Positions 1 through 22,800 of a DNA stretch of 64,000 nt are shown piece after piece. Origin of the DNA: Klebsormidium nitens (lineage: Eukaryota > Plantae > Klebsormidiophyceae); NCBI GenBank assembly GCA_000708835.1, contig DF236952.1:434001-498000 (forward strand), read 5' to 3'. The notes beneath the pieces are model-generated. The model was given only the letters and a program-made list of their open reading frames with translations. It had not been told where the DNA came from and searched no databases. The stretch's first letter is position 1; each line of letters opens with the position of its first letter. Both the position numbers and the translations under genes were made by a program.

Positions 1-3000
1 GGAAAGAAACGGCAGATTGATGTTTCCCGCAAAGCACGAAGACGTCAGGGGGGCCCAAGTAGTAGGCAAGTGCCCCTCAGTACTCGTATCAAAGCAGGAG
101 CTGCTCTCTGGGCTGCCGAACACCGGCTCAGGAAAGGAGTCCATGGCTGGTTGCCTGAAGAGCGGCCCATTGTCACAAAATGATTTACATGGACAAGAGC
201 ATGTATGCAGATCAAGCACCCAAGAACAACAACAAAAGGATTTGAAGAGGGCACTAAACAGAAGACTCCATGCCACATTTGAGGCAGGCTGGGAGCAGGG
301 TGGAAAAATAATCTTAAGATTGTCACAAAACAGTGCGAGGCTATACCTTGTTGTGGTGAAGGTGCCGCTGTCTTGCTTGAGAAAGGCCACAGACTCCACC
401 TGTAGAACAAGGAAGGCAACTGATGACTGCTGTGTTCACAGAGACCCTGCAAAGATTACAGACCTCAAATCATTATTACCCATGACTCATTTTATTTGAG
501 TTTCGTCAATGATTCGCTTCCAATGGAGGCAACTCGTAAGAATGATGCCTGGTAACGGTGCCATACACCGCACAGAAGACAGAGACCACCACCACATACT
601 GAACCACAGATGGACAGGGGCCAGCGTGAAAAACTTGCAAAAAGTGGTTTACAGGCGGGCAAACAAGTGCACAAAGGAAAAGCTTGAATACGACTCATCA
701 AGCATTTCCAGAGTCCCTTTTCTAACGCTTTATGAAAGCACACAAGAGAGTCAGAGGCCAGCAAACCGGACAGAGGCGAACCACATCCAACATTTAGGCC
801 ACATCAAAACTTAAGATGTCCCAAGCCCGTCGTCCCGTTCGCAGCACCTGTGGCCGCGGCGGGATAGCGAGGGCTGGGTGCATGTGGCAGGCAGGGTCTT
901 CAGTCCTGAGAGCCGCACTGCTGTCGCTGCCTGGGAACGGGCTCATGGGCATAGAAACGACCAAGAACCAACTTTAAAGGAGCCAAGACCACTGAACTTC
1001 AAGCTGTGAAGAAGTCGTTTCTTATTGAGATGGCAATGAGGTCAAACTGCTTTGGACCGCTGCTTTTGGACATTGGAGACAATTGGGAAGGGAATCTACA
1101 CTTAAATGGAGCATTTCAGTTCTGTAGACTTAGACAAAGAGGATAGGCACAAGGGACGTACTGACGTAAATGGCCAAGGCGATCAGAAAACTTTGAAGAC
1201 TGATCATTGTTTGATCCACACCGGCGTGGGCCTATTCGGTTGGAGAAAGATCTGAATCATCATCTCGCGGGCCAGGGATCCGACGCAGTTGCAAAAATGG
1301 AGAAACAATCTACTGCTTACAAGACAAGGGCAAAGTTGGTGAGGGTAGAGACCACAGAATTGAGAATTTATCAGAGATTCAGATAGAGCTCAGATTTTCT
1401 GGTATGCTAACATGTGCAGAAAAACAAGAAGCATGCACCCTCTCAAGCACCAACCTAAAGTGCAGCATTTGATGAGCAGAACAATCCATTTGGTGGTTGC
1501 AAGAGACCTTGGATCAGCTACTGGCTTGGCTCCGTAGAGCTATCGCAAAGTTGGAATCAGCGTCGATCATTTGGGGAAAGGGTCATCCTTTCCAAGGCCT
1601 CTTGCATATATGACATGAGCAGCAGAATAGATGATCTGTGTGTTTCGGCAATTTAAAAGAGTGGCTTAGAGTTTGTCTGTGTCTGGTAACATCAGACTCT
1701 ACTGACTACTATCAACAGGGAGCGCAATCAGAAAGGACAAAAGGAAGCAATGGAAACAAATGAAACCCCTTTCAATGAGGTGGTAATGGTTGTTGATAAA
1801 ACTCGTAACAAATGATGACAAAACCTAAAGAACTTCAAGATTCCACCCCCCCTTGATCCAATCAAAAACAATAACTGGTCTGTAGCAGAACAATTCAGCT
1901 GCCGAGCAACCTGAGTGTACCAACTCACCTTTCTTTTAGGATGGCATTTGTCTGCAGGTTGCAATGTACGTCCGGTAATCCCTGCCGAGAACAAAACAGC
2001 AAGGTGAGACATATTGCATTCCCTGCAAAACAAATGGAACTCCCGAGAGCAGACTCTGGGGTTTGAATGTACACCTCTAAATTCGCCGCTGGTCATTATG
2101 TTCACGAGGCGACTCAACGAGGCTAACCTCTGCGGCCGTTGAGGATTCCTGGACGAAATGGCATTGGGTCCAAGAGAAGACGTTGGCCGCTACGAATGGA
2201 TGGAACACGACTACCTCAAGAGCAACTTGATGAGGCGATCTGGTTCAGTCATAAGCTGGTTATGATTGCGCGACAACCCAAGACAGTGGTAATGGTTTTG
2301 AAGTACAAACACTAGTGTTCAATAGTAGGATGAGAAAGTGACATTGGAAAGTGCTCAAACACACAAGGGACATTGATGATAAAGACTGATACGAAAGAAT
2401 ACAAAACTTACCTTGGTTACTTGATCTCCATGAGGGCAAACAGGCCCTCAATAGTAAGGAACCTCATGCTTGAGAAAGCCATCTCCTCCCAAAATTCTGC
2501 AGCTGTCAGCCAACATTGCCATTGAGCGATACTCCGACCGCCATCAGCAGAAATGCCACACCTGCTGCTGAGGAGTGGGAAGTGCAACGAGGAATGAGAG
2601 CGCCGATGCGGCGCCCCCTCAGGTCAAAAGAAGACCGCTGAGAATGGTGACCTCTGCGAATCTGTGGGTGCTTTGAAGGCTGAAGCCGCCACCTTCTGGC
2701 ATTGGCGTTGACAGTGCATAGGTCTGGACTCTGAAGTCAGCACTGTGACACTGAAAGATTCTCTGGCGCTTTGGTAGAGTTGGAAATCTGGTCATTTGTC
2801 GTCAAACTCTCTGGATGCTAAGGCCGTACGATCTGTCAAATCAGGTTTTGACCGTCGATAGGAAGGCCCTAGGTGAGAGCTGCAACCGTCAGATAAAATA
2901 GCGCCACGATCGAACGGATGAGATTGACGTGATCAGACCTAAAGTTCCTCTCACGCCAAGGTTGCCAGTTGATGCTAGGTACCTAGCTAGCTAGCAAAGC

Positions 3001-3834
3001 AGCCTGGACAGCAGTCCCTAGATTCGGGATTGAAGACTGGTCATCAGCTCTTCAGCTCCACGAAAAGGTGCAACAGCGAGGAATTTCAATGTACAAATGC
3101 ACAAATATGTGCCATGTAAGCCAAGAGCAGAGTACCTAATTGTAAGCTGAAAGGGAAATGTGGATTTCTTTGTTTGCGAGATGAGGCTGGGAACCCTGCT
3201 GATTGCTGTACCCATTCTTAGGGGGCCTGGTTGCCAAATGCCCACGTGACCACATCCCAACAGCCCATGACATTTGATTTGGGGCAAGCGCACACACCGA
3301 TCTGCTTCTCGGCATTGTGCGACACGTTGTGGGGGTAAATCAAATAGTGCTGAAGAAGGGACCTGAGCTTTGCACTAGAACCCGTGGATTGGACACCAGG
3401 GGGGCCTGGGAAGTTTTTGAGACGTGCTAAAACAAGGTTCAATGCTACAATAAAACAGCACACTCGCCAACTGCCTACACCAACTTCGTTTCCAATGTAG
3501 AACTGCGGCGGAAGGGCGGTGAGGCCTGCCCTCTCTTCTAGCTCGTAGGTACTTTTACAGCAATCATTGGCCAGCTTGTAGTAAGATTCAAGAACAGCGA
3601 TCAAGTGAAACTGTGGGGATAATCTGACTAGTTGCTTGCTGGAAAGTGCGTCAAGCTGCAAGGATCATATTGCAAGACGCTTCCAAGAGTGTTCCGAAGT
3701 TGTTCTGAAACGCTGACGGGAAGGAGACGCAGGCCGCTGCGGCGAGCACGCAGCTACAAAAATGGAGCACGCAAATCCTTCGCAACAAATGGTGGAAAAG
3801 TAGATATAATTTCTGAAAACAAATAAGAGAAAAG

Positions 3835-6800
3835 ATGGACCCTGCGACGAACGTCACGGCGCTCGCTCTGCGGGTGGCCACACTCGAGGTGGGACTGCAG
3901 GAGCTGGCCGCAACGAGCACGCTCCGGACGCTGGTCGCCGGACACCTCTGGACGCTGCAAGCGGGCATCTTTGTCTTCCTCATGCAGGCAAGCCCCACCT
4001 TCCTCGCGTATGCCACTTGGGTTCTATCGTTCTCGTTTTGAGTATGGGCATCTGATCTTTCTGTTTTCACCGGTTCGCACCAGATTTTGGATTTGTTTTT
4101 CCCCCATCCCCTTGGACATGATTCACCTTATGTCTTTTTGTCCGTATAATGAGCATCCTCTCAACTTTGACTTCCTTGGGTTCTTTCTTTGACGTTCCCT
4201 GACACACATGTTCTGCTTTTCCCCCCCTTGCACAAGCCTCTTCGGATTCTCCCACAGGTCTCGGACCTTAAGTCCTTGTTCTCGAGCCCCTCTGGAAGCT
4301 TTGCCTACAAAGTGACAAATTGATTGTCCGCTCTTGCGCTTTTGCTTGTCAGAACCATGAACATTGTTGTGGGCGCTTAAACAGTTTTCATGTTCTGGGC
4401 CTCCTCATAAGGTAACCGAGCCCCAGAATTAAAAAAAAGGGGCACTTTGGGGTTTAGCCCCCTCTCAAAGTCTTGATGCTGAATTCAAGACGATTCAATC
4501 TGGTGATTGCACCATTCCCGCACAAAGGCGTTCGCGCCTTGTACGACCCGGGTTACCAAAGTTGTCTGTGAGCAGTCAAGAATCGCAAAAAGTTCCGTTA
4601 GCTCAAACGTGAAAGGCAGAGGTGTATAGGGAGCCTCGAAACAGATCCACTGATGCTGACGTGTATCGGTGCAATCATAGTTGCTGGGTTCAGTGAGTTG
4701 CTCATAGCCGGATTGAAAGCATTCTTACTGCAACACGGTTTTGTTTTCCACAATCAACTGCGCAAGCCGAGATGGTTTGGCAAGAAGTGATGCACACCAG
4801 GTGAAAAGCAGAGTAAATGCAGAGAGGTTTTTGCTTTTTGTGTCGTACTTTGACACGCTCTGCTGATTGGGGCAGGGAGAGTGCACCTTCAAGACCACGC
4901 TCAAAGTCGGACTGAAAGTTCTGATATGATCCTCACGTTTTGCAGGTCGGATTTGCGCTCGTCGAAGCGGGGACGGTGCGCACGAAGAACACCCGCAACA
5001 TCATGATAAAAAACATTCTTGACGCCTGCATCTCCGCGGTCGCGTTCTGGTCGTTTGGATACGCGCTTGCGTACGGGACCGGAAACAAAGTCCTGGGTTG
5101 GCGGCACCCGGGTAAGGACGGTTAAGCTTAACCTGTTTGTGTGTGGCGGTTTGATGACCTTGATGGGGTTACCATATTGGTGGTCAGTGGGGTTCCCCTT
5201 TCGTTGGAGCAACATGTAGGCACTATCTCCTCGATTTTGCAGATTGCTTTTGGATAATCAACGGTCTTCTCGTTCGCCCTTACATTTTATTACATATGGA
5301 GATTATTACATGGAGATTATTACATGTGGGAAAATTTTGACTTTCGCCATAGCTCATGGCTTTCCTTTGCACGTCGCTTCTGGGTCTGCCAAGTTTTCGG
5401 TCCCTCTATCCGCATCCATAGCTTATGGTCTCCCTCTGCGCCCTCAGATGGCTCTTCGTCCGCCGCGTTCTTCAACGAGCGCGACAAGGTGCGGTGGTTC
5501 TACAAGTGGACGTACGCCGCAACGACGGCGACGATCGTGAACGGAGCGGTGGCGGAGCGAACCAAGTTCCCGGCTTACCTTGTATATAGGTATGCTTACG
5601 CACCCGAAAAGCCTTTGGGCTTCGAGAAAGACCTTTGTGGGCCGTAGCTTTCCAGCGAGTATTGTCGTCTGCTAGTTGGCCCCATGGGCTAGCCGCAAGA
5701 CTCGTTCTATTTTTGAGGCTTTTTGTCCTGTTCTCAAACCCACGCTTCCAGCGACCCGGAAGGGGTTTCAAGGATTGAAGGCGGACAGAGTTGGGACAGG
5801 GCGGCTTGGGGCCCCGTCTCACCGGGTGGGTGCAGGATTGCACTTCGCTTGAAAATCTGGGACTTGGAAGTCAGGGTCTGGGCGGTTTGGTTTTGGGCTC
5901 GTGACGAGACTTTTTGCCTTCTTTCGAACTTATCACTGTGCACGTCCCTGTTATGATCCAATCCGTCAAGAAACCTGCATCGCATAGGCAGCACTTCCAG
6001 CTTATGTGTGGACTATCTGCGTCTGGTCTGCAGCGCCTCAATCGCATCATTCCACTTCGTTCGCATGCCGCGATGAAAAGATCATTTCTCGCAGTGCCCA
6101 TCTCCTACACTGTCTCCTGAGCGGCTTAACATTCTATCTAACTGTCAAGCCCCGTGCTTGCTTCTGTGGTTGCTATGTCCTGACTCTGCTGACACTCCCT
6201 TTCTGAGCAGCTTTCAAAACCAACACTTAGGAGCCACGTCAGTAATCGCAATGTGCCTTTAAGATGCACGCCTTTGCCCGTCCCCTGCAGCTCTCTTCCG
6301 AGCTCCTATTGTACCTGAGCCCTTATGGATGTCATAAGCTATTGATGCACCTGCCCATCGCTGCAGTTTTCTTCTGAGCGGCTTCATCTACCCGGTGGTC
6401 GTCCATCTGATGTGGTCTGCTGATGGGCTGCTGAGCCCTTATACGTACCATAAGATATTGGGCGGGGACGGGTATATCGACCTGGCGGGGGCGACCATTG
6501 TGCACGTGACAGGGGGGGTAAGCTATCCCCACGGGTTGGATATGGTTGGTGGAGTCTGGTCTGAGTCTGGTCTGAACTCGTATGATTTTGTCAATTCTTA
6601 GGAGAAGGCTTCTTCTGAGGTATGCGGCCAAGAAATCTGCACCAATTAACACGTACCGGAACAAGCGCATAAGGATGCGTGCCGCTTTAATGACCTTGAT
6701 AAACTCGGTCCATGACTCCGTAGATTCACATGGTTTCGAAGTTTCCTCCGATTATCCCTACGTGCCCCTTGCTCAGGGGAGCTAGTCATTTCTTTGAATC

Positions 6801-9800
6801 GGACAAATCGAAGCAAAATAAGCCTTTAAATTCAACTGCAAATTCAATTTTTACCCCGTGCAACTCAGATTCACCTGGGCGCTGAGGAAGGGGCCCCTGC
6901 ATAAGCACCAGTACTTCGAGCTGAGTGTTGTTTCAACCCTGTACTGAAACCTTGATATACTCTAACCAACCTGGTGCATCCCCAATCCCTTCTCAGCAAA
7001 CAAGCTTTCTGGCCGCCTGGATGGTTGGCTCCCTGCAGCAACACCAGTTCTCGATCCAAGTTCTGACTGTCACCATCTAAAGCGACTTCTATTTTTCGTA
7101 ACACCGCACTAAACTCTTTCTTAACCCTGGCAGTTAACGAGCTTTTTGGGCGCTTGGATGGTTGGCCCCCGCATCGGTCGCTTCGACATCGACGGCAAGC
7201 CGATCGAGTTCAAGCACCACTCGATCGCCTTCATTGCAACCGGGACTTTGATTCTTTGGGTCGGCTTCTACGGGTTCAACGGCGGGAGTGTGTACATATC
7301 CGACGACCTCCAGGTTAGTGCTTTCTACACCTAACTGGTTATTGACAGCCGATCACGTCATCACCGCGACTCATATTTTTGGGTCGGCTTCTTTGGGTTC
7401 AATGGCGGAAGGGTACACATATCCAACGACCTGCAGGTTAGCGCTCTTCTATTCCTTCAATCAGAGTCTGACTGCAGAATGTATTGTTTGTATGAGTCTC
7501 ACTATCTTCGTCCGCTTGTGCAACTTTGATGGCGGGAATGTGTACATATTTAACGACCTGCACTATAGCGGAATCTCCAATTTTTGGATAGATTCTGTTA
7601 GAAGTCAACGTTTTGTCACGCCGGAATGCTTCAGGGCGCTTGCAAGGGCCATGGGGACTGCCGTAAAGGGTCGACATCTTAGGATGCAAAGAGGTTCGGA
7701 CGCAGACGTCCAGTTCTGTCGAGGAAGTCGCAACTCGGTCGAGAGGAGAGGGTTATTCAAGCCTTGCCAAAACTGCCTTTGAGCCAGAAAAGCGTATCTT
7801 ATAACCTTTTCCGAGCCAAGTTGCTACAAACGAGTGGGTAGTGTCAGTTGAAGGGGCCAAACTTGCTCATCATCAACAGATAGTTCCGAGCAAAGCCGTC
7901 CAAACCAAGCCCTCTGGCTTTCTTAAAACCCAGGTTACTTTTCCGTTACAGTTATGGCTCGACACGATCGCGCGCATCATGATGAACGCGACGGTCTCGG
8001 CGGCGTTCTCGGGGCTCACTGTCTTTGCGGTGTCGCTCATGGCGTCAAGGGCGGTGCAGCCGTCGGACACGTTCAATGGCGTGATTGGGGGCCTTGTGGC
8101 GGCGTCTGCAACAGCGTGAGTGATTTGTTTTACCGGAGTGGCGTTTCCCGGAATTCCGAGAAGAATTCCAGAAACCTTCCAGGTGTTTCCAAGCCCCTTC
8201 CGCTGCCTTTGAAATTCAAAGATGATTTTGACTTTTGGAAGTCAACACACGTTCTACGGCGTGAACGGGGGCCTTGTGGCAGCGTCCGCAACAGCATAAG
8301 TGATATGTCGAAGTGGAGTTCCTTTCGCGGAGATCTTTAGAGGATTCTAGAAGCTTCTGAGCTGTCTCTTATGTTGACTCTGATCTTGAAACGCGGTACG
8401 CTCTGGAAGACAAGACACGTTCAACGGCGTGATTGGGGGCCTCGTGGCGGCGTTAGCAACAGCGCGAGTGGCAGAGTTACCTTTACTGGGAGATAGCTCG
8501 AAGTGCAGTCTCGTCGGAACTGCTTAAGCGTTTCCTTGGACGTTTGTAGAAATCTTGCAGTCTATGTCCAGGCTGCTTATGCTGATAGGAACACAAAACC
8601 GGCTCTTGAAGACGAGAGACGTTTGTTGTGTCTCATGGTGCACGCCCGAGACAAAAATAATGGGATCACCTCGATCGTAGGTTTTAGGCAAGCCGCTCAG
8701 ATCGACGCTGACTTCACAACACTGGCAATCCAGCGTACCTCGTTCCACGCTACTCTGATATCCATCGCTTAGAGAAGGACGACAGATGTTTTATACCGCA
8801 TTTTCAGACGGCCGAAGCATCTCGGTACCTGGGAACCCTGAATATCCAACCCCGTAATGTGCGGGGGCTCTTAACCCCAAAGCTCCTCACCCAATCTCCA
8901 GGAGCGTACCCAGACATGGGCGGCATGCATCGTGGGCTTGCTTTCGGGGCGCACCTACTTTAGTGGCAGCTGGATGTCATATATTATGCTCGGCATAGCT
9001 GTTTCAGTTTCCAGGTCATCAATAAGCCCAGAACGGCTCGGCCTAACAGTCCTAAACCTTTATCTCCAGGAGCGTAACCCAGTCATGGACGGCGTGCATC
9101 GTGGGCTTCATCTCAGGCCTCGACTATTTCGGCAGCAGCCGGATCCCAAATCACGCTGGGAATAGCAGTTTCCAGGACTCTTAACCCAGAGTCATAACCT
9201 CCTTGTTTTCAGGAGCGTAACCCAGACGTGGGCTGCGTGCATTGTGGGCTTCCTCTCGGGCCTCGCCTACTTTGGCAGCAGCCGCCGGGTTTCAAACTAA
9301 CGCCAGGAATAGCAGTTCCAGGACGTTAACCCTGACTCATAACCTCCTTCTTTTCAGGAGCGTAACCCAGACGTGGGCCGCATGCATCGTGGGCTTCCTC
9401 TCCGGCCTCCCCTACTTTGGCAGCAGCCGCCGGGGTTTAAACTTACGCCAGGAAAAGCAGTTCCAGGACGTTAACCCTAACTCATAACCCCCTGAGTTTC
9501 AGGAGCGTAACCCAGACGTGGGCCGCGTGCATCGTGGGCTTCCTCTCGGGCCTCGCCTACTTCGGCGGCAGCCGCCTCTTCCTGTGGCTGCACATCGACG
9601 ATCCCGTAAACGCCGCGGCGGTCCACTTGTGCTGCGGCTGCGTGGGGGGCCTCGCGGTGGGTCTCTTTGCGACAAACGACGGGATCCGCGCAGCATATGG
9701 GATTCCGCAGCCGCGCGCGCAGGGGCTGGTGTACGGGGGGGACTTCACGCTGCTGGGAACGCAGGTAAGTCGACAATGTGAATACTCTAGCTCGGTGGGT

Positions 9801-11265
9801 TTGCAACGAACGATGGGATCCGCGCAGCGTATGGAATAGCGCAGCCACGGGCGCAGGGGCTGCTGTACGAAGGAGACTTGACATTGCTGGGAACGCAGGT
9901 GAGTAGGCGGTGTAAATACTCTTGATGTGTTAAGGAAACGGTGTGTGGAGGAAGTTAACAATGCTGGGAGCGGAGGTGAGTAGGCAATGTGCATATCCAG
10001 ATGTGTTTAGGGGCTTGTACGGGGGGGACTTCACACTGCTGGGAACGCAGGTGAATACGCGGTGTGAATACTCCAGGTGTGTTCGGGGGCTGGTGTAGGG
10101 GGGGGACTTCACACTGCTGGGCATGCACGTGAGTCGGCGGTGCGGATTCCCAGCCCCGCTCAGAGGCTAGTGATGACAGCATTTGTATCGGTTGAACGAG
10201 TCCGACGTCTTTGCAGGTGGTGGGTCTGTTGTTGATCATCGGCTAAGTAGGCGCAACCTCATAGCGCATGTTTGTCATCCTACCTGTCATCAGGAAATCT
10301 CCTGAAACGGATACTCGTCGCAATCTCTGTTATTAGTTTCAAGTTTTCTGATTCTTGTAATAAGTATCTTTGAAACCACCTCGCTATGTTTTGCAGGTGG
10401 TGGGTTTGTTGCTCATCATCGGTTGGGTGGGCGCGACCGCGTTCTGCATGTTCTTCATCCTTCTCGTCACGGGGAACCTCCGTAGCAGCCGGCAGGCAGA
10501 GGAGGTGAGCTCCTGAGTTTATTGGGCCGTCTCAAGCAACAGTAGTAATCTCTTGAAGTGCTCGGCGGACAGCTAGCTCCAGGTTGGGGCTTAGGGCGGC
10601 CTTTGGCGCGGAGCCAAGCGGGCTACGGCGTTCTTTCTGATACTATTGTCTGTTGGGGCTGGTTCCCGTGATTCGACTATTGATTGAGGCTTTTTCTGTA
10701 GTGGGCGTCTAGACATACGGCGCCTCTCTCGTTCTCAAAGGACGCAACAGCAACTGTGGGGCCGCCAGCGATCAATCGCTGCTACCGCGGGGCACTTGCG
10801 ATGTTATCTTCATCGCACAGTACCACCCATGCTCGACCCTTTCCGAAACTCAGAAGACCGTTCTAAGATACTGAACGGGCGATTCTATGCCACGTTGGTC
10901 TAGACGTTCCATACCGCGGCAACATGTCCGACGAGCTCCCTGCGCAAGTGTTCTTGCGCAGAGCGTTTCCTTGACAGATGGCAACGAGACGATCTGGCAG
11001 CACTCCGGTATCTCGGGTGTCAAGTCCCCAAAGTTCATTAGCCCTGATTTTGGAAACCGGTTCCGCAGGTTGGTCTGGACGTTGCATACCACAGCGGCAC
11101 CTCCGACGAGCTCCCCGCGCAAGAGCAGGGCATTTTTGTGGGCGCAAATCATCAATACGTTCCGGCGGCGCTTGCTTTCTCTGGTTCTTAGAATTTCAAC
11201 AGCTGCAATTCTGAACTTACAATTGCCATTTGCAGGTTGGTCTCGATGTTGCGTATCACGGGGGC
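3835..11265 (+). CDS. AMT1: Ammonium transporter domain (Amt/Mep/Rh family, AMT1-like) of the fusion gene
   Basis: Motifs seen: FLMQVGFALVEAGTVRTKN, GAVAERTKF, GFIYPVVVHLMWS, DLAGATIVHVTGG (first pore His), GPRIGRFD, GFYGFNGGS, IDDPVNAAAVH (second pore His), and C-terminal GLDVAYHGG. Confidence 0.93.
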
Positions 11266-14200
11266 ACCTCCGACGAGCTCCCCGCGCAAGAGCAGGGCGT
11301 CTTTGTGGGCGCCATCAACAAGACGATCCGGCGGCGGCTCAGCTCGAGTGGGTTCGGGTCGTGCCGGAAGAACGTGCAGTGGTGGCGCAGCCGCTCGTTC
11401 TTGGGCCTCCCGGGGTTCCAAAAGAACCTGAAGCGGACCCCCCTGGGGCAGTACGCGCTGTCGACGTACGAGGCCAACTACTTGATGGAGGACACGTGGC
11501 ATGTGAGTGTTGCTGTGCTTTTTGACTGATTGATAGGCGTTTAGGGTTTCAGGGTTTCGTCCTACAGTGTCGTCAGCCTTAGCAGCTGCCGGGTTTTCAG
11601 TAGAATTTGAAGCGGACCTGGGGCATATGTCCTGTCGACATATGAGGCGAACTACCTGATAGAGGACACGTGACATAAGCGTATTTCTGTGCCTTTTTGG
11701 AAGACAAGGATTCAGGGTCTCATTTCACTGTGAGATTAGAGGTAACTGCTTTCTAAAAGCAACTATCGGGCTTCCAAAGAACATGAAGCAAACCCTGGGG
11801 GAGCGCGGTGTCGACTACCCTCTTGGGAGCCACGTGGCGTTGGGATCTCAAGCCTTTTGAAAGGTTCAACGTTTCGGGACGGTCTTGGACGGGGAACCAG
11901 AAGCTGAGGGGATTTAGTGGGATTTAGTGACGGCAGAAATCTGAAGGTGCGCAGAACCATCGCAGAGGTCGTAGTTTGTGGGGATATTGAAAAGCATCGC
12001 TGGATCTGACGGCGATCCTGACACTGATTATGCTGCCCCCCTCGCCAGATGGATTCCCTCCCCAACCTGATGTACATGGGCGTTTTCGACGGGCACGGCG
12101 GCACAGAGGCCGCCACCTTTGCGAAGGAGCGACTGCACGAGCATCTCCAAGGTGAGGAATGATACCCCCAGTTCCTTCGTCCTACAGTAGTTTTTCTGCA
12201 CTGGGCGCAGTTTCGATCACGACTTGGAAAGGTCGAGCAGCATCACTTGGAAATAGGAGCGTTGCACGGACGCCTTTATCCTTTGAGGCGTTGCTGCTTG
12301 CCGAATAGCGATTACACGAGCATCTGCAGGGGATGAGGTAGCTGCTCAATCTCTGTTTCTTCATACTGCTGACCGCCACCTGCAGTCTGTCCGTAGACGT
12401 CCGCAGTCTTTCTTGCGAAACGTTGCAGTCTGTCTTACACAACCTCGAAAAGCTCCCTCTCAAAGCGTCACTGGCAAAAGTAGGCGTTCTGGCTGCGGAC
12501 CCAAAGTTCGACGTGTGTGCGTCCAAATATTCACTTGTCGTAGATTGTTCGACTGACCACACCGGTTTTCTGAAACCCGCAGATTCACGGCAGAGAATGG
12601 TCTCTCGGAGATAAGTTTCGATTTTATGTTGAGTCAGGTGTATGTTGAGTTAGATCAGTACCCCGGGCGCAAACAAACTAAGAACCTAAACCCAAAGTTA
12701 ACATGCTCCGCACCCGTACCCACCCTAAACCCCCAAACCAACCTCACCTGTCCCCCGGGCATGACCTAACTCAACATAGCCATAACTCAACATAAAATCG
12801 AGACTACTTTCTCGGAGGACACAATTGCCGAGAGACCATTCTCGGCGTTTTTCAAGAAGGACACCGAGTTCACGGACCTCGTTGCACGGCCCACGTTCCA
12901 CTGACCTCGGTCGATCTTCTTATTTGCGACCAACCACTCACGCCGGTTATCCTGACCAACTGAATAACCGTTCTCCCTAACCCCGCAGATTCGGTCGCAC
13001 AGAACGGTCTCTCAGAAGACTCAATCGCCGAGGCGTTCCTGAACGCGGACGCCGAGTTCACGGACCTCATCCGGACGGCGTTCGTCCGGTCGCCGCACCT
13101 CGCGACGGTCGGGAGCTGCGCGCTCGTGGCGGTGCTGACGTCACAGGCCACGTTGTACGTCGCCGGGCTCGGGGACTGCCGCGCGGTGCTCGGGACCGGG
13201 AGCAACGGTCGCCTAAAAGCGGTTCAGGTGAGGGAGCATTTTGGGCGAGCTGCCCATCAATCAGGTCCCGGTTGGCTTCAGTTAATCGTGGTTTTCAGCC
13301 GGGCAGAGGTTTGACGGGGAACCGGCCGGATCCGCTGCTTTTTGAAACTAACCCGTGTGCGGGTTCGATTGTTGATGGAGGGCAACAGACCATCTGCCAA
13401 AGTGCTTCGCGAGGCTGTGGACCATATCTTCAAGTCTCCACAACCAGGTAGTCTGCATGTTACGTCAGTGGGCTCGCTCAATTGAACTTAGCAACAGCAC
13501 TCAACAACAGCACCTCATATTGCGATGAATGATTTGGAGCAGCTCCTAGACTGGCAACGTTCACCATAACAAGTATTACTTACACCCACTGATTTGCAGA
13601 CTAGAATCTATATACACCACACTCGCAATGGGAGCTCCTCGCAAGCAAAAACCAGATATGCTCATCTCAGCCTGACCCCTCGTCGAGAGTGGCATTCGTT
13701 TTCAAGACGACAAAGGTCTGAAGCGACGTCTGCTGCTTGACATTCGATCTGGATTTGCTAAACCAGTTCGTCGTGGCCCCGCAGTTGTCGGAGGAGCACA
13801 ACGTGAACATCGCGAGCCACCGCAAAGCGTACCTGGAGGGGCATCCGGAGGGGGAAGCCGCCGTGGCGTGCAAGAACGGCATGTACCGGGTCAAGGGCAA
13901 GCTGCAGGTGCGCGCGCTCGTCGTTTTTCCATCATCCATTGCTTGATTGCATACCCGCGCTTCCGTTGACCTTTGACCATCTTATCAACCCAGGTCTTTT
14001 AGTTCCATCTCCCACCTCAGGTGACCCGGTCGTTTACGACCCTCATCAACCTTTACCTCCTAACCGCGTGTTTCCAGGTAACCCGGTCGTTCGGCGACTG
14101 CTACATGAAGCTCCTGGAGTTCAACTCCGCCCCCCTCTTCCCGCGCTTCCGCTGCCCGGCGCCATACCACCCGCCGTACGTCACTGCGCGTCCGTCCGTC

Positions 14201-15768
14201 ACTGTCCGGCAACTGCAGCCGTCCGATCGTTTCCTGATCCTAGCATCGGACGGCCTGTGGAACTACTTGGGAAGCCAGGACGCCGTTGATATTGTACAGA
14301 AGAACGTCCGGGGGGTGAGCGTTCGACTGCTTTTTGGGTTTTGGCTTTCGCACCTTTGGACGTCCGCAAGTTGGGGTGACTCCATTGCTTCTTATCTGTC
14401 CGAAGGGTGAGCGTCCCGATTGCTTTCGATGTTTTTGGATTTGTGTTTTCGGGCGTCCGCAGACTGAGCGCGACTCCAATGCTTTCTGAGGATGTCCGAA
14501 AGGCGAGCGTGCGACTGCTTCTGAGATGCTTGCGTGTGCAATTTTGGCCGTCCGCAGGCTGAGGGCGCCTTCCATCAATGCTTGACGATGTTCGGCAGGA
14601 GAGCGGCCGGCCACTCTGTTGAGACGTCAGGGTTTGTACGAGGGCTTTCCAAGTGAATCGTGAATAAGTCTGCATGTTCAAACGTTACGCCCCCTTGCAT
14701 TTCGGAGCTGATGCCGCTCTTTGGAAGAGCTTCATGGACCGCTCTGGAAGCCTGCGAGGCTACTGTGTGTTACGCCCTCAAAGTTTCGACCTTTGTCGCC
14801 AGACTGAAACTTCACGCATATGCCCCCGACTTCATTTCTTCGTTCTGGTCTTGCAAGTTTCAAAGCGCGCTAGTCGCTCAATCGTTGGACGAGTTTGTAA
14901 GAATACGGCACACCTGTTCGTAACCTGCTTCACGCTCCTCCGATTGGTATCGTGAGGTGTTGAGGCATTCTCGGTTCTCTTTTCAGGACGTCGCTCGGTT
15001 GCTCGTCCGGACAGCGCTTCAGCGGGCAGCCCAGAAGCACGAGATCACCTTCGAGGAGTTGATGCAGCTTCCCAGGGGGATGGTGAGCCACGCAGTCGTC
15101 CCCCCCAAAAAAGAAAAGCTTTCTACCTGCAACGACATCTAGAAAGTCATACACATTTCGGATTCTTAGGCTGCCTTCCTTTGTTGTTTCGCTCGAAAGT
15201 CAATCACTGTACGTCTGCTGGAACGGGCGGCAATCGAGCCAAGGACACGACGCTCGACTCCATTGTCTGACTTTGAAGACGTAGCTGATCGTTGAGACTG
15301 ATTGCAATCGGCGCTGCGTTGGTCTTCAAAATCCAACAGCTTCTTCTTTTCCTTTCTTTAAGAGGAACCTTTCCTAAGAAGTGGCTTCGAGTAGCTCAAC
15401 AGCATGCTTTCTGATGCTCGCAGAGGCGGGACTACCATGACGACATGACGGTTGTGGTGTTCTTCTTCAAGCAACCGAAACCGTCCGACTCGGCCCGGGC
15501 GATCGACTGGGAGGGAAGCTTTCACCGGCGGATATCGAGTGCGTCTAGCCGGCAAGGCGACGATTCTAGGGACGTTGAGATGGGGGAGGTTAAGGAAGAA
15601 GAGAACGACGGACGTCCCGACTTCCGGAACTTGCCGACCCTAAAAGTCACAAGAAGGGGGCCAATTCACACAGGGTCCTCCAATGATATTCTATCTATGC
15701 CGACGTATGAGGGGAGGTCCTTCCGGATGAGTGGGTCTCTACTGGACAATGTGCATTCTCCAACGTGA
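3835..15768 (+). CDS. Ammonium transporter (AMT1-like)-PP2C clade D phosphatase fusion protein, 15 exons, 911 aa
   Basis: Exons: 3835-3987, 4946-5111, 5448-5589, 6367-6517, 7134-7313, 7952-8115, 9503-9764, 10397-10504, 11236-11502, 12049-12151, 12989-13227, 13785-13907, 14078-14314, 14987-15082, 15424-15768. They total 2736 nt, all phases are compatible, and the reading frame is open to TGA. Amt motifs and PP2C motifs are both present, and exon 9 spans both domains. Confidence 0.88.
7377..7570 (+). repeat. Two degenerate intronic copies of the 3' end of AMT exon 5 and its donor region
   Basis: Intronic gggtcggcttctttgggttcaatggcgg...gacctgcaggttag and ggcgggaatgtgtacatatttaacgacctgcac resemble the real exon end gggtcggcttctacgggttcaacggcgggagtgtgtacatatccgacgacctccag|gttag. 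Confidence 0.85.
8262..8470 (+). repeat. Two degenerate intronic copies of the 3' end of AMT exon 6 with mutated donors
   Basis: gggggccttgtggcagcgtccgcaacagc|ataagt and gacacgttcaacggcgtgattgggggcctcgtggcggcgttagcaacagc|gcgagt, compared with the real ...acagc|gtgagt. Confidence 0.85.
8880..9580 (+). repeat. Tandem array of about 145 bp (5 copies) of the intron 6 acceptor plus the start of exon 7
   Basis: cag|gagcgt(a)acccagac... recurs at 8902, 9070, 9213, 9358 and the true exon at 9503. Spacings are 168, 143, 145 and 145 bp, and divergence increases away from the exon. Confidence 0.95.
9790..10135 (+). repeat. Four degenerate intronic copies of the 3' end of AMT exon 7 and its donor
   Basis: Variants of ggggacttcacgctgctgggaacgcag|gtaagt recur with donor-like ends near 9900, 9977, 10052 and 10130. 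Confidence 0.88.
10217..10305 (+). repeat. Pseudo-exon copy of AMT exon 8 with intact acceptor and an in-frame stop
   Basis: ttgcag|gtggtgggtctgttgttgatcatcggcTAA lies 180 bp upstream of the true ttgcag|gtggtgggtttgttgctcatcatcggtTGG. Confidence 0.85.
10894..11191 (+). repeat. Two upstream copies of the start of exon 9, one with an intact acceptor at 11068
   Basis: gttggtctagacgttcc... at 10894 has its acceptor mutated to CAC. ccgcag|gttggtctggacgttgcataccacagcggc... starts at 11069. The true exon starts at 11236. Confidence 0.88.
11440..15768 (+). CDS. PP2C (PPM) Ser/Thr phosphatase domain, plant clade D-like, of the fusion gene
   Basis: Motifs seen: GQYALSTYEANYLMED, GVFDGHGG, VGSCALVAV, GLGDCRAVLG, LSEEHN, YRVKGKLQVTRSFGD, FLILASDGLW, VARLLVRTALQRAA, RRDYHDDMTVVV. 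These match the clade D pattern and retain the metal-binding Asp residues. Confidence 0.92.
12593..12843. mobile_element. Foldback/MITE-like imperfect inverted repeat in intron 10 of the AMT-PP2C gene
   Basis: The left arm gagaatggtctctcgg...tcgattttatgttgagtcagg..tatgttgagttagatcag..ccccggg (12593-12667) is the reverse complement of the right arm ccccgggcatgacctaactcaacatagccataactcaacataaaatcga...ccgagagaccattctc (12752-12843). No target-site duplication was identified. Confidence 0.6.
14306..14570 (+). repeat. About three degenerate ~90 bp tandem copies starting at the exon 13 donor
   Basis: gtccg(g/a)(g/a)(g/a)gg(t/c)gagcgt..cgactgctt / cgattgctt recurs near 14306, 14398 and 14494. Confidence 0.75.
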
Positions 15769-16201
15769 CCCGCGTTGAACCTTGCGTAGTAACGGAGTTA
15801 AGGACTTGGGGATGTCAGTCTGCGTCATATGGAAGGGTCAGGACAGTTGGGCGCGCGGGTAGGGCGTCATTGTACATTACAAAATATAAGATGGTTGTAG
15901 CAATTGGGATTGAGGTGATTAAAAAGTCAATCACTTTCAATGCCCGTTATTGTTGAAGTAATCTTCCGGGTCTAGATGTTGACCGATCGGCCCCACTTGT
16001 GCGTCTGAAAGTCGTGATTGCACGAGATTTTGTGCGTCGGATACCATCGATAAATGAGCTAGCCGCCCAACGAAGCATATCGCCTGTTCATCACAGCACA
16101 TGATGTTGGAAACACGCAGAAGGAGCGATTAGCAAGGTCGTGTCGATTGCACTAAATCCTAGTTCTACAATCCTTGTAACCTGTTAATCTGGAGCTATCC
16201 G

Positions 16202-16295
16202 GAGGTTATATAAAATCTGCATCTACATACATGCGGCTATGCATATCTGCCTAGAGGTTATATAGAATTTGCATCTACATATTCTGCTATGCATG
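16202..16295 (+). repeat. Intergenic 52-bp direct repeat, two copies
   Basis: gaggttatata(a/g)aat(c/t)tgcatctacata...gctatgcat occurs at 16202 and 16254. Confidence 0.8.
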
Positions 16296-19200
16296 CATCC
16301 GCCGCAACCGCTGCGTCGAATCCCACCCGAGTATCAATCAGAGGATATACGAAACCATAAGCCGCGTCGCCGTGCCTCGTGTGCATGTGTAGGCAAACTA
16401 AAGCTCTCGTGCATCATTGCTGCAATCCGGATCTGATTATAGCGGATGTATGGCACGGGGGCATCTAAGTTTGCCGCACCGTGGCAACCCGGGTGGTCCA
16501 TGGGTGCTAGGGCCTCAGCTGGCTTCGATGAGAGACCAACCATTGAATGCACCGCGCTGCACCAATCAAATGAGCGCGCTGCAATATTGTCTAATATACG
16601 TATGTTTTATGATGGCTATTCAATCATGTGGCCAAATATGGAAGGCGACTTAGATTGGCAGCCGCGGAAAGGAGCATGATCGAGAGCATGCCCTAGAAAG
16701 CATATCTGATGGGCCTTTATGCGAAGGATCCACCTACGTACTCGGCCCCAACTAGCTTGCTAGGCTTGCATTGCCTTCCAAGCAGGCTTTGCATTGACTG
16801 TGCGTTCATGCAGGCCATGTAACACTGATGGCCCCAACCACAAAAAACTGCAAACTATACTTCTATGTTACTGTCATGACGACAACATGTTCCAACGCTT
16901 TAACATATATAAATTGGATTCTGTGCAGCTAGGAGTCCCCACCTGCAGCGCTTCATCACTGTGTTGGATCGTCATCACTGTGTTGGATCGACAACCTGTG
17001 CATTTATATTGCAGTATCCTCACTTTCAAATATTGGACAAGTCATGAAGTGGGGATAACATACCGAGCTGTTGAATTGTGACTCAGGCGTCCAATCCCCC
17101 GGCCGCCTAGCGCCTGACTCCGAGTCCAGCCGAGCGGGCCCGGGGGGTCCCGGGGCCGGAGTCGGGCCAATTGCAATTGCTGATCAGCCGGGGTGCAGGC
17201 CGCGGAGCTGGCAGTGGACTGTTGCAGGGGAGTGCTGGCACCGTACGGTACGAGTGCGCATTGCGCAGTCCCTCAAGTCTCGTCTAGGTATCGTACGGTA
17301 CCTACCGTAAGGCTGCGTAAGCTTCAAGATGACAAGATGTACCTATGGCCGTACCTACCGGTATACGCCGGGGACCGGACTGTCTGGATGGATCACACCG
17401 TGATGTCGACATGATATACCACGGTCCTTGATAGGTACCTACCTATGACGGGATGCGCTGTTGAACCGTTTAGCCGATCCCGCTTCTATGGCAAATTCAA
17501 CTGATACTGGAGAAGTTCTTGCCCTCCCTTTCCGGAATCCGGAGTTGAGTACGGTACGCCCGGCCCAGCCTCAGGGCCCGCAAAGTCCGGGCCGGACTCT
17601 CTGGGACCAGCTGGGCAGCTTGTCTGCATACCGGTACCTAGGACTCGCCATTCCTATGCCATTGCGGTACCATGCTTGGACTCTGATCTTGATTCTTGAA
17701 GTGTACAGTCGCAAATGCTTGGCATACCTATTCCTGGGACTCGGGGAGGAGCAGGAAGGCTATGGTCGGCGGCATGCTCCTTGTGAGCTTGCCAGCAGCT
17801 TATTGGTAAACCTCGCCGCGGGGGCGCAAAATAGGCATATATATATTCTGGGTAGTCGTCGCGTCCAGTGCTTCCATTTTGAGCGCCGCTGGAAAGGTAA
17901 AGGTGAGTCATTATACAGAGGCTTTGCGCCACAACATTGCCCTCAAGCTGTCAGTTAAGATCTGCTTCTTTGAATTTGAGAGTCACCTACAGCGGATGGG
18001 GTTACATTAGTCTCTTCATGCAGACCTGGCTGCCCGTGCCTGGCTGAATCCCTTTGCTTTTCTTGGGATCTTCCATGTTTGAGTGAGACCTGACGAGCTG
18101 TGTCGCTGTGGCGCAGACTCTATCAAGACAATATGTAGGGGTGTTGAAAGCAAAGGGCTGCCTGCTCAGCTAAAGACTGGGCCAGCATAGTTGCTGGTTT
18201 TGGGGGTTTCCTTTTGTGACGTCAAGGGGATTAAGGAAAGGCAATGTTGAGATCAAGTAGTCCTGTTGAAGGCTGGTTCTTCTAGGATCACGGAGGGAAG
18301 AGTCACCCAATCGTGTTGTGCCAGCTTTTGACATTGTCAAACTCACCCCTGTGCAGTACATCTCGTACTGGATTGCGCAAAAAGGTGTATTTAGCTCTTG
18401 AAAAGCTCATTGTCTGACAAAATGGGGTTAAAAAGTCTCAGCTATGGCCATCAAATCTTATGCATTTCTGTCCAAAGCATAAAACTTGAGAAGATAGTAA
18501 GACGATGCCCCAGAGCCACCTAGGAGCAACTTGCTGTCAAGTCTGCTTGCAGCTTTGAGGAAAGACCTGCGGATGTCCAAACGTGTTTGCCCAGGTTGAT
18601 AGACTTTATGTTGCTGCACTGCAAGCTCCTGCCCTGATTGCCTTGCGCTGCCCTAAAAATTTATGCATAGTTTTGGAATCTTGACTGCAAGATCTTGCGT
18701 GGCCACGATCGGCGGACACTTTTGATGGTTTAAGAGTGACAATAGGCAAGACACTTTGTAGTGCCTGCTTAGTAGCCTCTCCAGGTCTTGGGCAGGGATG
18801 TTCTGGGTCGGCAATCCTAATTAGTCATTCAGGCTGTAAATCGTTCTCACAGCCCCAAGATCAGTAACAGATTCCAATGCAACACTTCCAGGTAGACAAA
18901 GTGTTCTCAGTTGGTTGCATGTACTGTGCCCCATTGGTTGGGGCTATCAAGAATTCCTCCTCAAGAATGGAACCTCCGCTTGAAAGTTACGATTAGAGGC
19001 ATGTTGACAGTACCCTAGGACTTAAGCCCCGGTCAATGTCCTACCCACAAAGCTTTGCTCTCAAATCCGGGCTGACCTGATTTTTTTATACATCTATCAA
19101 GTTCTGACAATGCTTTGATACTTTGCAGCAAAGTTGAAGACTTTCTCCAAGTCTATTATCAGTACTCCCAGTTATCAAGTCTGCAAGGGAACATATCTTC

Positions 19201-19875
19201 GGAGCTGACGTTACTTACGTCAGTACCCAAAAGGTGAGGATGCACATCCTATATTTTATGCAACTTGGCCAGTTTGTCCCTTGTTGCTGCTATATTCCTG
19301 ACTCGGCGCATACACATCCCTGATAGCTAGCTTTAGACTTAAAAGTTGAAGTTCATTTCAGGCTTGGATGGGCGCTAATTCCAATGCGTAAGTGATGCAG
19401 CGATGCAATTGTGTCTGAATCAGTGGTAAGTGGCTAATCGAGTCCCAGCAAGTGCTAAGCGCTCCAAGAAGGGTTGTCATGTTCGAGTCGGGAATATTCC
19501 TCTTTTTAGGGTCAGGATACTGCTGTTCTGATATGAATCTCATCAGCCAGATCGAAACCTGGGCACTTGTGCAGCCTTTCATCAAAGCTGTGTTTTCGTT
19601 TTGGCGACTGCCAACGCCTCAAGCAGGTCTGGTGTGCTCTCGAACACTGCTCAGTCGTAGCTATGTAAGCACAAGAATCAGAAAGGAAAGTACACGAGAA
19701 CTAGCTTCAATCAAATTAGTCTTCACATGCTCAGCCCTGTCCACAAGGAGACCCACTTCTCCTCGTCCCTGGTCGCCAATATTTCCTGTTCAAGCAGCCT
19801 CTTCTTCAAGAACAATTCTGAAACCCGTTTATCTCACCACATCTTTCCTGTTTTCCATGCAGTCCAGGGAAACGA

Positions 19876-22800
19876 GTGATGGCCATGCGGCTTTTCGCCA
19901 TGCGACACGTCGTTGTGTTGGTGTTGTGCCTGCTGAGGCTTCTCGGGGGAAACCATGCCGCAACGATGGACGAGATCTCGGCCTTGGTTCAGGGAGACAT
20001 CCGCACCCAACAGAGGCTGTCCCTTGACGACAAGGGACTCAGTGGCCCAATCCCTCCGGAACTGGGTCTCTTGACCAACCTGACGCATTTGAACCTCGCC
20101 GCGAACGCGCTTACAGGCCCCATTCCTCCGGAGCTCGGAAACCTCGCGAATTTGCAGAGGCTGACTTTGTCTAAAAACAGGCTGTCGGGGGAGATTCCCG
20201 GGGCTCTGGGCAAGCTAGCCGGGCTAGAGTACTTGGATCTTGATGACAACCAGCTCTCGGGGCCACTTCCCCCCGCCCTGTTTGCCAACCTGGCCAAGCT
20301 GGGCTGGTTAAGTGTGTTCAACAACAGCCTCACGGGTGCCATCCCCCGAGAGGTCGCGGGGCTCACCTCCCTAGTCGTATTGGACGCCCGGTACAACCGC
20401 CTGTCTGGACCTATTCCGGCGGAGCTGGGTCGACTTGGCAATCTGCTCCGTATGGATCTGTCCCGGAACCAGCTCACAGGGGGGATCCCCCCCGAGCTGG
20501 GCAACCTGCCTAGTCTTCGAAGGTTGAACGTCTCCAGCAACTATCTGAACGGCTCGCTTCCCCCAGCTCTTGGGCGGTTGGCATCTTTGGAGTATCTGGA
20601 AGCCTTCGCAAATCAGCTTTCGGGCGAAATCCCCCCCGAGTTGGGTCAGCTGGGGAAACTTGTGTGGTTGGAGTTGTTCAATAACCGAATCTCTGGCGGG
20701 ATCCCTCCCGAATTGGGCGACCTGACGGCTCTTCAGGTGCTCAGCCTCTCCCGAAATAATCTAACGGGGCCCATTCCCCCGGCTTTGGGCAAATTGAGCA
20801 ACCTGGCTGACCTATACTTGTGGAACAACAGCCTTACGGGAGGCATTCCGGCCGAGCTCGGGAATCTTCAGCGCCTCGAGATGATCGACCTATATAACAA
20901 CAACCTTACGGGCCCCATCCCCCCAAGCCTCGGCGGACTTCCCTCCTTAACCTACGTCAGCATGGCCGCCAACAGTCTCAACGGCTCGATTCCCCCGCAG
21001 ATCGGCGCGCTAAACAACCTCGAAACCCTCTATTTGGGGGATAACGGCCTCTCTGGCCCGATTCCCTCGGAGCTGGGACGCCTGGGAAAACTCCAAGTCT
21101 TGGACCTGTCATACAACGGCCTATCCGGCCCGATTCCCCCGGCGATTGGCAACCTCACCGCGCTTTCATACCTCAACCTTCTGGCCAATTCGTTGAATGG
21201 TACATACCGCAAGAAGTGGGCGCCCTGACCAATCTGCAGTTTCTATATCTCTCCTTCAACCTGTTCGCCGGCAGCCTACCGGAGACACTAGCCGGTTTGA
21301 CCAACCTTCGGGAGTTCCACTTCCGGGGTCCCACCCAGTTCACTCAATTCAACTACAATCCCGGCTTGTCCGGCCCTATCCCTCCACAATTGGGCGCTTT
21401 ACGCAACCTGCGCATCCTTGATTTCCGGAAGCACAAGTTCTCGGGGCGCATCCCCCGGGAGCTCGGCGCGCTTGGCGCCCTAGAGGAGTTACACCTTCAG
21501 AGCAACAACTTCTCTGGGCCCATCCCCGGGGAGCTCGGCAACCTGCGCAGCCTTCGGGTGCTCAACCTGTCTGACAACAACGGCATTTATTACACTGCTT
21601 ATCCTGACGCCCCGAGGGGTCTCGTCGGTCCGATCCCCCCGGAGCTCGGCCGCCTGTCCAACCTCACGGCCCTGGACATTTCCGGAATATTCAATTTCTC
21701 GGGACCAATTCCAACGGAGCTTGGCGCTTTAACCCGTCTGGAAGAGCTTTACCTTCAATATAACAATCTTACTGGGGCAATCCCGCCCGGTTTGGGCAAC
21801 CTGGGCCGGTTGCGGGTCTTGAACCTTGCTGCTAATCAAGAGCTTACCGGGCAGATTCCGCCGGAGCTTGGCAACCTGGCGCGGCTGGAGGTGTTGATAC
21901 TGAGGGATAGAATATTCGGCGTTCAAGCGGCGAAGTTGTCGGGGTCTATTCCTGGGGAGCTCGGTCGACTGTCCCGGCTTAGGATTCTGGATCTGGGCGG
22001 TTTGGGTAATCTGTCGGGGGGCATACCCCCGAGTTTTGGGAGCTTAAACCAGTTGTCCGTCTTCAGAGTCCCGAGCTGCAACCTGTCTGGTCCCCTCCCG
22101 CCGGGCCTATTCAGATCCATGGCAAACCTCGTATATCTGGATCTCTCCGGAAACAGTTTGTCGGGCCCCATTCCTCCCGGGCTTGGCAGCAGCTTACAGT
22201 TGAGGGAGATTTCTCTCGGGGAAAACAACCTTGACGGCCCTATCCCTGTTGAGATTGGCAAGCTCTCGAGCCTCACCAGTTTGTTTCTCGGCTTTAACAA
22301 CCTGTCTGGGCCCATACCTCCAGAGCTTGGAAACCTCTTAGAGTTGCGCTCCCTAGGACTATCCAACAACAAACTAACGGGGCCCATTCAAGTTCCCATC
22401 GGCTTTGGGACCGGGAATTCGTCTTTTGAACGACCGTCTCTCAATCTGTCCAATAACCTCCTCTCCGGCTCGATTCCTTCGGAGCTGTTCTCCGGTCCCA
22501 GGAGAGGCTGGGGCATGTTTACTACACTTGACCTCTCCAATAACAGCCTTTCTGGGCCTATTCCAACAGCAATAGCAAGCGTTTCCATCGAATTCCTGCA
22601 CCTGGCCAACAATAACCTGTCCGGCCCCCTGCCCCCTTTAGCTGGCCCACTATCTCTTGTTCGAGAGATGGACGTTTCCAACAACCGCCTGTCGGGACCC
22701 ATCCCCCCTTCCCTTGCCGAGCTTTACTTCTGCAAGAATATCCGCCTCCGAAACAACAGTTTTACCGGGCCCCTCCCCCCCAGGCTCAAGACTACAATAG

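Follow-up and report, generated by a model that had tools for sequence, protein, structure and literature searches.

A window of 64,000 nucleotides (nt) from the green alga Klebsormidium nitens (assembly GCA_000708835.1, contig DF236952.1, positions 434,001 to 498,000 of the forward strand, numbered here from 1) carries a gene in which an ammonium transporter (AMT) and a PP2C protein phosphatase are encoded as a single polypeptide of 911 amino acids (aa). The protein is a member of the published AMPC (AMT-PP2C) family, so its architecture is already known, and both its identity and its architecture could be assigned with near certainty. It comprises an 11-helix AMT-type module (aa ~36–452), a linker (aa 453–503), a PP2C domain (aa ~504–820) and a disordered tail. 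Taken as a whole, the data are best explained by an AMPC protein in which the AMT module carries a tethered clade-D-type PP2C that acts in trans, and we regard this reading as probable.

The gene was rebuilt from the raw sequence and the 15 exons of Table 1, when joined, gave one open frame of 2,736 nt. The translated model was 100% identical to the NCBI entry 'probable ammonium transporter [Klebsormidium nitens]' (P0003, 911 aa), and the two together agree with the 15 phase-compatible exons and single 911-aa frame proposed in an earlier note on this DNA. The introns were GT-AG throughout, except for intron 1 (3988–4945), which has a GC donor (GCAAGC) in place of GT; this intron lies outside the stretch covered by RNA read mapping (9490–15480), and use of the GC donor is implied by the identical annotated protein. 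Per-exon Pfam scans, a check that the earlier note had proposed, recovered both domains, with Ammonium_transp (PF00909) on exons 2–8 (profile positions 16–386 of 399) and PP2C (PF00481) on exons 10, 11 and 13. The two halves of the protein meet in exon 9, an uninterrupted 89-codon frame that begins VGLDVAYHGG (aa 443–452) and finishes YEANYLMEDTWH (aa 520–531), the latter being the first PP2C metal-binding motif. The presence of the AMT C-terminal motif and the first PP2C motif in one exon, with neither intron nor stop codon between them, had been claimed before and was reconfirmed from the frame. The sole methionine of exon 9 lies inside MED, and a separate phosphatase could therefore not start in this exon. 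Every PP2C metal motif previously said to be intact was located in the translated model (MED 526–528, DGHGG 545–549, GD 627–628, SDG 743–745 and HDD 802–804). An open reading frame check of the flanks at 1–3800 and 15800–19900 gave no convincing reading frame related to the AMPC gene.

The relationship between the two halves was further studied using RNA contigs, assembled from the short reads of four runs in four studies and mapped on 9490–15480. The runs contained ~0.20–0.28 of the sampled words of 10397–13227, in agreement with the exonic share of that region, roughly 0.25. Introns 7 to 14 were each seen as a GT..AG joint exactly where modelled, from exon 7 to exon 15, and the depth of these splice joints was 36–270, as against ~2–10 for intronic contigs; for intron 9 the depth was ~2, compared with ~200 for exons. 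A single contig of 3,845 nt was placed on exons 7–9 and 11–13 and extended 1,766 nt upstream of exon 7, long enough to hold the remaining 956 coding nt upstream as well as a 5′ untranslated region. Across exons 8–11 the contigs of the four runs showed neither a branch nor an alternative start. Before testing, it was conceivable that exon 9 marked an assembly mis-join or that two genes lay side by side, as exon 10 opens with ATG, yet no positive support for such an artefact was found. Exon 9 contains neither a stop codon nor a start codon that could be used, and spliced contigs from four studies pass exons 8-9-10 unbranched. The same junction is also kept in other genera and in a K. nitens paralogue; the paralogue has its halves separated by an intron, yet its annotated protein is fused and matches the locus exon by exon. 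A mis-join or a neighbouring gene pair is thus effectively excluded, its probability being minimal, and the earlier statement that this is one gene and not two neighbours is borne out by the contigs and by the identical NCBI protein. A separate PP2C transcript starting from the ATG of exon 10 was considered and rejected, as its product would be without the MED motif and the contigs are unbranched there.

The earlier note had supposed that this architecture was undescribed in the green lineage. That supposition did not hold: an N-terminal AMT domain has been reported on many charophyte and bryophyte PP2C.Ds, under the name AMPC, and both Pfam domains are annotated in the NCBI and UniRef entries. 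The same study (PMC11665922; PNAS 2024) reported AMPC to be absent from vascular plants, placed its phosphatase inside or sister to clade D, mentioned independent bacterial AMT-SpoIIE fusions and speculated that the phosphatase autoregulates the transporter; its experiments concerned the unfused Chara PP2C.D only, for binding to the H+-ATPase CbHA2. In the collection of papers searched, none besides this one mentions an AMT-PP2C fusion. Novelty had been made to depend on the fusion not yet being widely annotated, and it was found annotated in at least five other streptophyte lineages.

The distribution of the fusion was explored with exon 9 alone as a query against a representative library, which returned two matches. 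One was a 971-aa Chara braunii protein (P0002) that matched across the junction and carried both Pfam domains (PF00909, 8.5e-98; PF00481, 3.5e-38); the other (P0001) was a low-complexity repeat protein and was discarded as spurious. When P0002 was used as the query, fusions were recovered in K. nitens (P0003), the K. nitens paralogue (P0006, 891 aa), Marchantia polymorpha (875 aa), several Closterium species, Mesotaenium endlicherianum (953 aa) and two transcript assemblies. Fused proteins numbered at least 13 across Chara, Marchantia, Closterium, Mesotaenium and the K. nitens paralogue. An AlphaFold DB cluster search gave no full-length two-domain match.

Six proteins from Closterium and a transcript assembly (P0019, P0021, P0122, P0209, P0237 and P0241) are annotated as AMT-only or PP2C-only and are nested inside the AMPC clades; two of these single-domain proteins lie on one contig, and P0241 begins with the transporter C-terminal motif. 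Fused genes whose models were split or truncated are their probable source, and database counts of the fusion are therefore underestimates. The paralogue P0006 (L001:3001-15458) has SGG where the family has the metal-binding SDG, a substitution by which its phosphatase may be impaired, and it has an extra intron between the exon for the transporter C terminus (9424–9561) and the exon for the PP2C start (9831–about 10004).

Separate trees were prepared for the AMT domain and for the PP2C domain, the latter unrooted. In the AMT-domain tree, AMPC formed its own clade with a support of 100 and a long stem, and in the PP2C-domain tree the AMPC phosphatase domains were split from free clade D by a branch with a support of 99. 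The K. nitens protein grouped with the Chara, Marchantia, Closterium and Mesotaenium fusions in both, and the branching order was identical in both trees, namely K. nitens, Chara, the K. nitens paralogue, Marchantia and the Zygnematophyceae. Such congruence of the two domain trees suggests a single ancient AMT-PP2C fusion event that would predate the divergence of Klebsormidium. The unfused clade-D branch joins the unrooted PP2C tree beside the earliest AMPC branches. P0021, tried as a PP2C outgroup, was itself a fragment of a Closterium AMPC.

Within its family, the transporter falls on the AMT side, and not on the MEP/AMT2 or Rh side. Its closest reviewed proteins were plant AMT1s, at 34–37% identity and with template modelling scores (TM-scores) by hit of 0.80–0.87, and its best 120 unfused database matches were protist and bacterial AMTs at 37–45% identity, with no land-plant AMT1 among them. 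In identity the AMT1s are no closer than these protist and bacterial AMTs. The Amt hallmarks are present: the W170/S256 site, the Y129/F252 gate, the twin histidines H200/H360 and E441-x-x-G444-x-D446. The pore residues W170, D192, H200, F252, S256 and H360 are kept. Most AMPC N termini have an N-x-T/S motif before helix I (NVT here, within aa 1–20, window 3835–3900), which would fit a topology with the N terminus outside the cell, possibly glycosylated, and the phosphatase in the cytoplasm.

An ammonium-receptor signature for the N1/N2 sites has been proposed as Q-x6-E-x15-N-x2-D-[F/T]-x54-60-T-x2-[S/T] (cluster 2), and plant AMT1s fall in the same cluster and are viewed as possibly bifunctional (PMC11152129). 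The signature was found at Q51, E58, N74, D77, T132 and T135, with two small deviations, an alanine after D77 and a spacer of 53 residues; when the residue following the Asp is left free and the spacer may range over 50–62, 12 of the 13 AMPCs match. As a sequence feature it is compatible with ammonium sensing. One interpretation is that the AMT module binds ammonium without transporting it, like Ks-Amt5. In both sequence and fold, the nearest solved structures are the bacterial sensors Sd-Amt1 (8qj3/8qj4/8qpf) and Ks-Amt5 (6eu6), with a phmmer E value of about 1e-51, as against 1e-33 for AmtB and 1e-26 for Mep2; the N1/N2 signature is present, and N306 stands at the position of Sd-Amt1 Asn-269, which narrows the exit. 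However, of the pore-blocking helix-I trio of Ks-Amt5 (F27/Y30/F34) only the first is matched (F54), the small residues V57 and T61 standing where Ks-Amt5 has the pore-closing Y30 and F34, and plant AMT1s carry the same signature and transport. A receptor that does not transport is accordingly judged quite improbable.

The C-terminal region was compared with AtAMT1;1 using the residue numbers printed in PMC4852598 (G456, D458, T460 and Y467); the AtAMT1;1 C-terminal peptide itself was not found by a text search. The equivalent of T460, two residues past the Asp of ExxGxD, is Ala448; among the 13 aligned AMPCs, 11 have Ala at this position and the other 2 have Val. The equivalent of Y467, nine residues past the same Asp, is Asp455, and conservation ends directly after HGG. 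The AMT1 label given to this domain in the earlier note is thus right as to the AMT side and goes too far as to AMT1, the T460 phospho-switch and the conserved C-terminal Tyr being missing. Likewise, GLDVAYHGG is present but forms part of the universal Amt/Mep ExxGxD motif and is not specific to AMT1; the AMT1 regulatory Thr is also missing from it.

These residues bear on the published proposal (PMC11665922) that the transporter is kept open by the tethered PP2C, which would strip inhibitory phosphates from the C-terminal region of the AMT module it is attached to or of one nearby. Plant AMT1s are closed by phosphorylation of the C terminus and activated by the PP2C ABI1 (PMC9516733, PMC4852598), a precedent in favour of the idea, and the AMPC phosphatase lies ~50 residues from the C-terminal region. 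The linker (aa 453–503) is moreover basic, with Ser/Thr beside basic residues, for example RRRLSSS at 472–478, and R/K-R-L/I-S/T-like stretches are also found in Chara, the paralogue and Mesotaenium; these could be alternative sites. They are, however, only loosely conserved, and the Ser/Thr sites not strictly so. With Ala or Val at the T460 position in 13 of 13 aligned AMPCs and Asp at that of Y467, the canonical AMT1 shut-off site is missing, and the autoregulation idea is weakened at that site. As the T460-type Thr is missing, a reset of its own C-terminal switch by the AMPC phosphatase is unlikely.

The phosphatase domain gave its best unfused matches among land-plant PP2C 38/42/46/60/64/78 and 'Pp2c clade D 6', at 41–45% identity over >90% of the domain. 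The best reviewed (Swiss-Prot) matches were Arabidopsis PP2C 48, 38, 79, 46, 67, 64 and 63 and their rice counterparts. In the PP2C nomenclature these are the clade-D members, and with the nearest named relatives in that clade the phosphatase is clade-D-like, in support of the earlier assignment. The closest solved structure was pyruvate dehydrogenase phosphatase 1. Residues E527/D528, D545/G546, D628, D744 and D803/D804 are invariant or nearly so in the AMPC family, the exception being the paralogue SGG.

An AlphaFold2 model, built from a 111-sequence alignment, showed both domains with confidence (mean predicted local distance difference test score, pLDDT, 85.5; predicted TM-score, pTM, 0.80), while aa 456–503 (pLDDT about 41–64) and aa 822–911 were of low confidence. 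In the model the domain connection looks like a flexible tether and not a rigid helical relay as in Sd-Amt1, aa 456–503 lacking the structured helical connection to the output domain that is seen in bacterial receptors. It could be that the AMT module is a passive membrane anchor, localising a constitutively active PP2C.D without any dependence on ammonium. The variable, low-confidence and flexible linker is in keeping with this, and unfused angiosperm PP2C.D enzymes likewise act at the plasma membrane (PMC11665922). However, the pore residues and N1/N2 ligands are invariant across 13 proteins that are ~50% identical overall, which an anchor would not need, and the domains have remained joined since before Klebsormidium diverged, their trees being congruent. 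On balance a simple anchor seems rather unlikely, though less so than a phosphatase resetting its own transporter.

In the reading preferred here, with a tethered phosphatase acting in trans, AMPC would form trimers in the membrane, like other Amt proteins, and so present three phosphatase domains at the inner membrane face. The transporter module would bring the phosphatase to where ammonium is taken up, and the N1/N2 ammonium-binding pocket may regulate it. From there the phosphatase would act in trans, its substrates being membrane phosphoproteins in the vicinity, with the plasma-membrane H+-ATPase or canonical AMTs as candidate targets; the former is a known clade-D PP2C substrate in angiosperms. 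Ammonium-dependent control of the phosphatase, which would make AMPC a true transceptor, is put forward tentatively, as a possibility that falls short of an even chance. Several points weigh against the overall picture. Transport by AMPC, its phosphatase activity, its localisation and its substrates are all inferred, and the transcript support consists of assembled short-read contigs and not of single long molecules. The N1/N2 signature is common to ordinary transporting AMT1s and so is no proof of signalling, and the K. nitens copy has a Tyr (Y129) at the outer Phe-gate position. Linker length and sequence are poorly conserved across the family, and so variable and flexible a linker argues against the rigid mechanical coupling of the bacterial Amt sensors and makes a purely tethering role equally possible.

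A more far-reaching version holds that N1/N2 occupancy controls the tethered PP2C, which would set the phosphorylation of the H+-ATPase or other transporters, and that AMPC is ancestral to the free PP2C.D of land plants, which regulate acid growth, through loss of the transporter. The conserved pocket and catalytic site are compatible with it, as are a fusion older than the Klebsormidium split and the place at which unfused clade D joins the PP2C tree, unrooted as that tree is, but as a combined proposal it is considered improbable. Note that the likelihoods expressed here for the different mechanisms overlap and are not meant to sum to one. What is added to the published description is the proof from K. 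nitens transcripts together with the residue constraints, that is, no T460 switch and an intact pore, N1/N2 pocket and catalytic site. If the phosphatase is ammonium-responsive, AMPC would be the first nutrient transporter of a eukaryote to carry a signalling enzyme of its own, and it would couple nitrogen uptake directly to control of the proton pump at the root of the land-plant lineage. Marchantia, with its AMPC gene, offers a system in which an ammonium response could be tested.

Table 1. Coordinates in the window of the AMPC coding region, its exons and the tandem copies of exon boundaries
Feature	Position	Strand	Content	Evidence
AMPC gene, whole coding region	3835..15768	+	15 exons, 911 aa; stop TGA at 15766-15768	Gene model, identity to P0003
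Exon 1	3835..3987	+	aa 1-51: start codon, N-terminal NVT motif, Q51 of N1/N2 signature (3985-3987), GC donor	Sequence, signature match
Exon 2	4946..5111	+	aa 52-106 plus one base: helix I, F54, E58 (4964-4966), N74 (5012-5014), D77 (5021-5023)	PF00909 E 2e-12
Exon 3	5448..5589	+	aa 107-153: Y129 at outer Phe-gate position; T132, T135 (5522-5533) of N1/N2 signature	Pfam, signature match
Exon 4	6367..6517	+	aa 154-204: W170, D192, first pore His H200 (6503-6505)	Pfam, alignment
Exon 5	7134..7313	+	aa 205-264: GPRIGRF motif, Phe gate F252, S256 within GFNGGS	Pfam, alignment
Exon 6	7952..8115	+	aa 265-318: N306, matching exit-constricting Asn-269 in Sd-Amt1	Pfam, structure-paper comparison
Exon 7	9503..9764	+	aa 319-406: second pore His H360 (9624-9626)	Pfam, RNA contigs
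Exon 8	10397..10504	+	aa 407-442: last transmembrane helix, start of C-terminal region, ending E441-E442 of ExxGxD	Pfam, RNA contigs
Exon 9 (fusion exon)	11236..11502	+	aa 443-531: G444-x-D446, A448 (11251-11253, T460 equivalent), linker aa 453-503 (11266-11418), MED (11485-11493)	Frame, RNA contigs, alignment, model
Exon 10	12049..12151	+	aa 532-565: DGHGG metal-binding motif (12088-12102)	PF00481, RNA contigs
Exon 11	12989..13227	+	aa 566-645: PP2C core, G627-D628	PF00481 E 3.7e-9, RNA contigs
Exon 12	13785..13907	+	aa 646-686: PP2C flap region	Frame, RNA contigs, structure match
Exon 13	14078..14314	+	aa 687-765: PP2C core, S743-D744-G745	PF00481 E 5e-18, RNA contigs
Exon 14	14987..15082	+	aa 766-797: PP2C C-terminal helices	Frame, RNA contigs
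Exon 15	15424..15768	+	aa 798-911: RRDYHDD motif (H802, D803, D804), predicted disordered tail aa 822-911, stop	Frame, RNA contigs, model
Intron 6 acceptor and exon 7 start	8891..9574	+	Five tandem copies, 145-169 nt apart, decaying with distance; last copy alone spliced	Repeats, TRF, RNA contigs
Exon 7 end and donor	9722..10147	+	Five tandem copies; first copy alone used	Repeats, TRF, RNA contigs
Intron 8 acceptor and exon 9 start (GLDVAYHGG region)	10890..11312	+	Three tandem copies; last copy alone used	Repeats, RNA contigs
Exon 9 end (YEANYLMED region and donor)	11407..11794	+	Tandem copies inside intron 9	Repeats

Almost every exon–intron boundary of the AMPC gene is repeated in tandem one to four times inside the adjoining intron, in decaying copies. 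The 12 kb of the gene contain 17 such repeat families, with copies spaced about 75–190 nt apart, and arrays were also detected by Tandem Repeats Finder (TRF). The copies include intact-looking splice sites that are ignored by the main mRNA, only the outermost sites being spliced; besides those in Table 1, examples within 6994–14500 lie at 7255–7572 and 8067–8487. The paralogue locus (L001:5296-15005) shows the same pattern, with 13 families at other positions, and the remaining 48 kb of the window had no such repeats at a stricter threshold (≥45 nt, ≤400 nt apart). Intron 10 contains, at 12600–12810, an inverted repeat resembling a miniature inverted-repeat transposable element, which low-depth RNA contigs with unrelated flanks enter at 12705 and 12736; this suggests a dispersed element transcribed from other copies.

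Within the AMPC family the K. nitens protein is structurally no different from the others; its junction lies inside one exon, where the paralogue has an intron. The land-plant PP2C.D enzymes are 39–45% identical to its phosphatase over the whole catalytic domain (TM-score by hit 0.76–0.82), with the same metal motifs and a shared FS-x-A-x-x-x-AN-x-x-x-ED start, but they are soluble or peripheral proteins of about 370–400 aa without a transporter and form a separate, well-supported clade. Plant AMT1s share with AMPC the twin His, the Phe gate, the Trp/Ser site, ExxGxD and the N1/N2 cluster-2 signature, whereas AMPC has Ala448 for T460, Asp455 for the Tyr and a long-stemmed transporter clade of its own. 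Among fungi, the Mep2 transceptor is a eukaryotic Amt-family protein with proposed transport and signalling roles and C-terminal control (PMC4852598), but it is a MEP-clade protein without a fused enzyme, and its signalling goes through separate partners.

Parallels in layout also exist in bacteria. Ks-Amt5 (Amt-histidine kinase) and Sd-Amt1 (Amt-HAMP-diguanylate cyclase) resemble AMPC in having an Amt fused C-terminally to a cytoplasmic signalling enzyme, conserved N1/N2 ligands and an Asn at the exit position. AMPC differs from them in its phosphatase output, in a flexible linker in place of a continuous helix or HAMP, and in that the pore-blocking residues are mostly missing. The bacterial AMT-SpoIIE proteins, in which SpoIIE is PP2C-like, follow the same logic of an ammonium transporter joined to a phosphatase of the PPM fold; according to PMC11665922 they are phylogenetically distinct in both domains and hence of independent origin.

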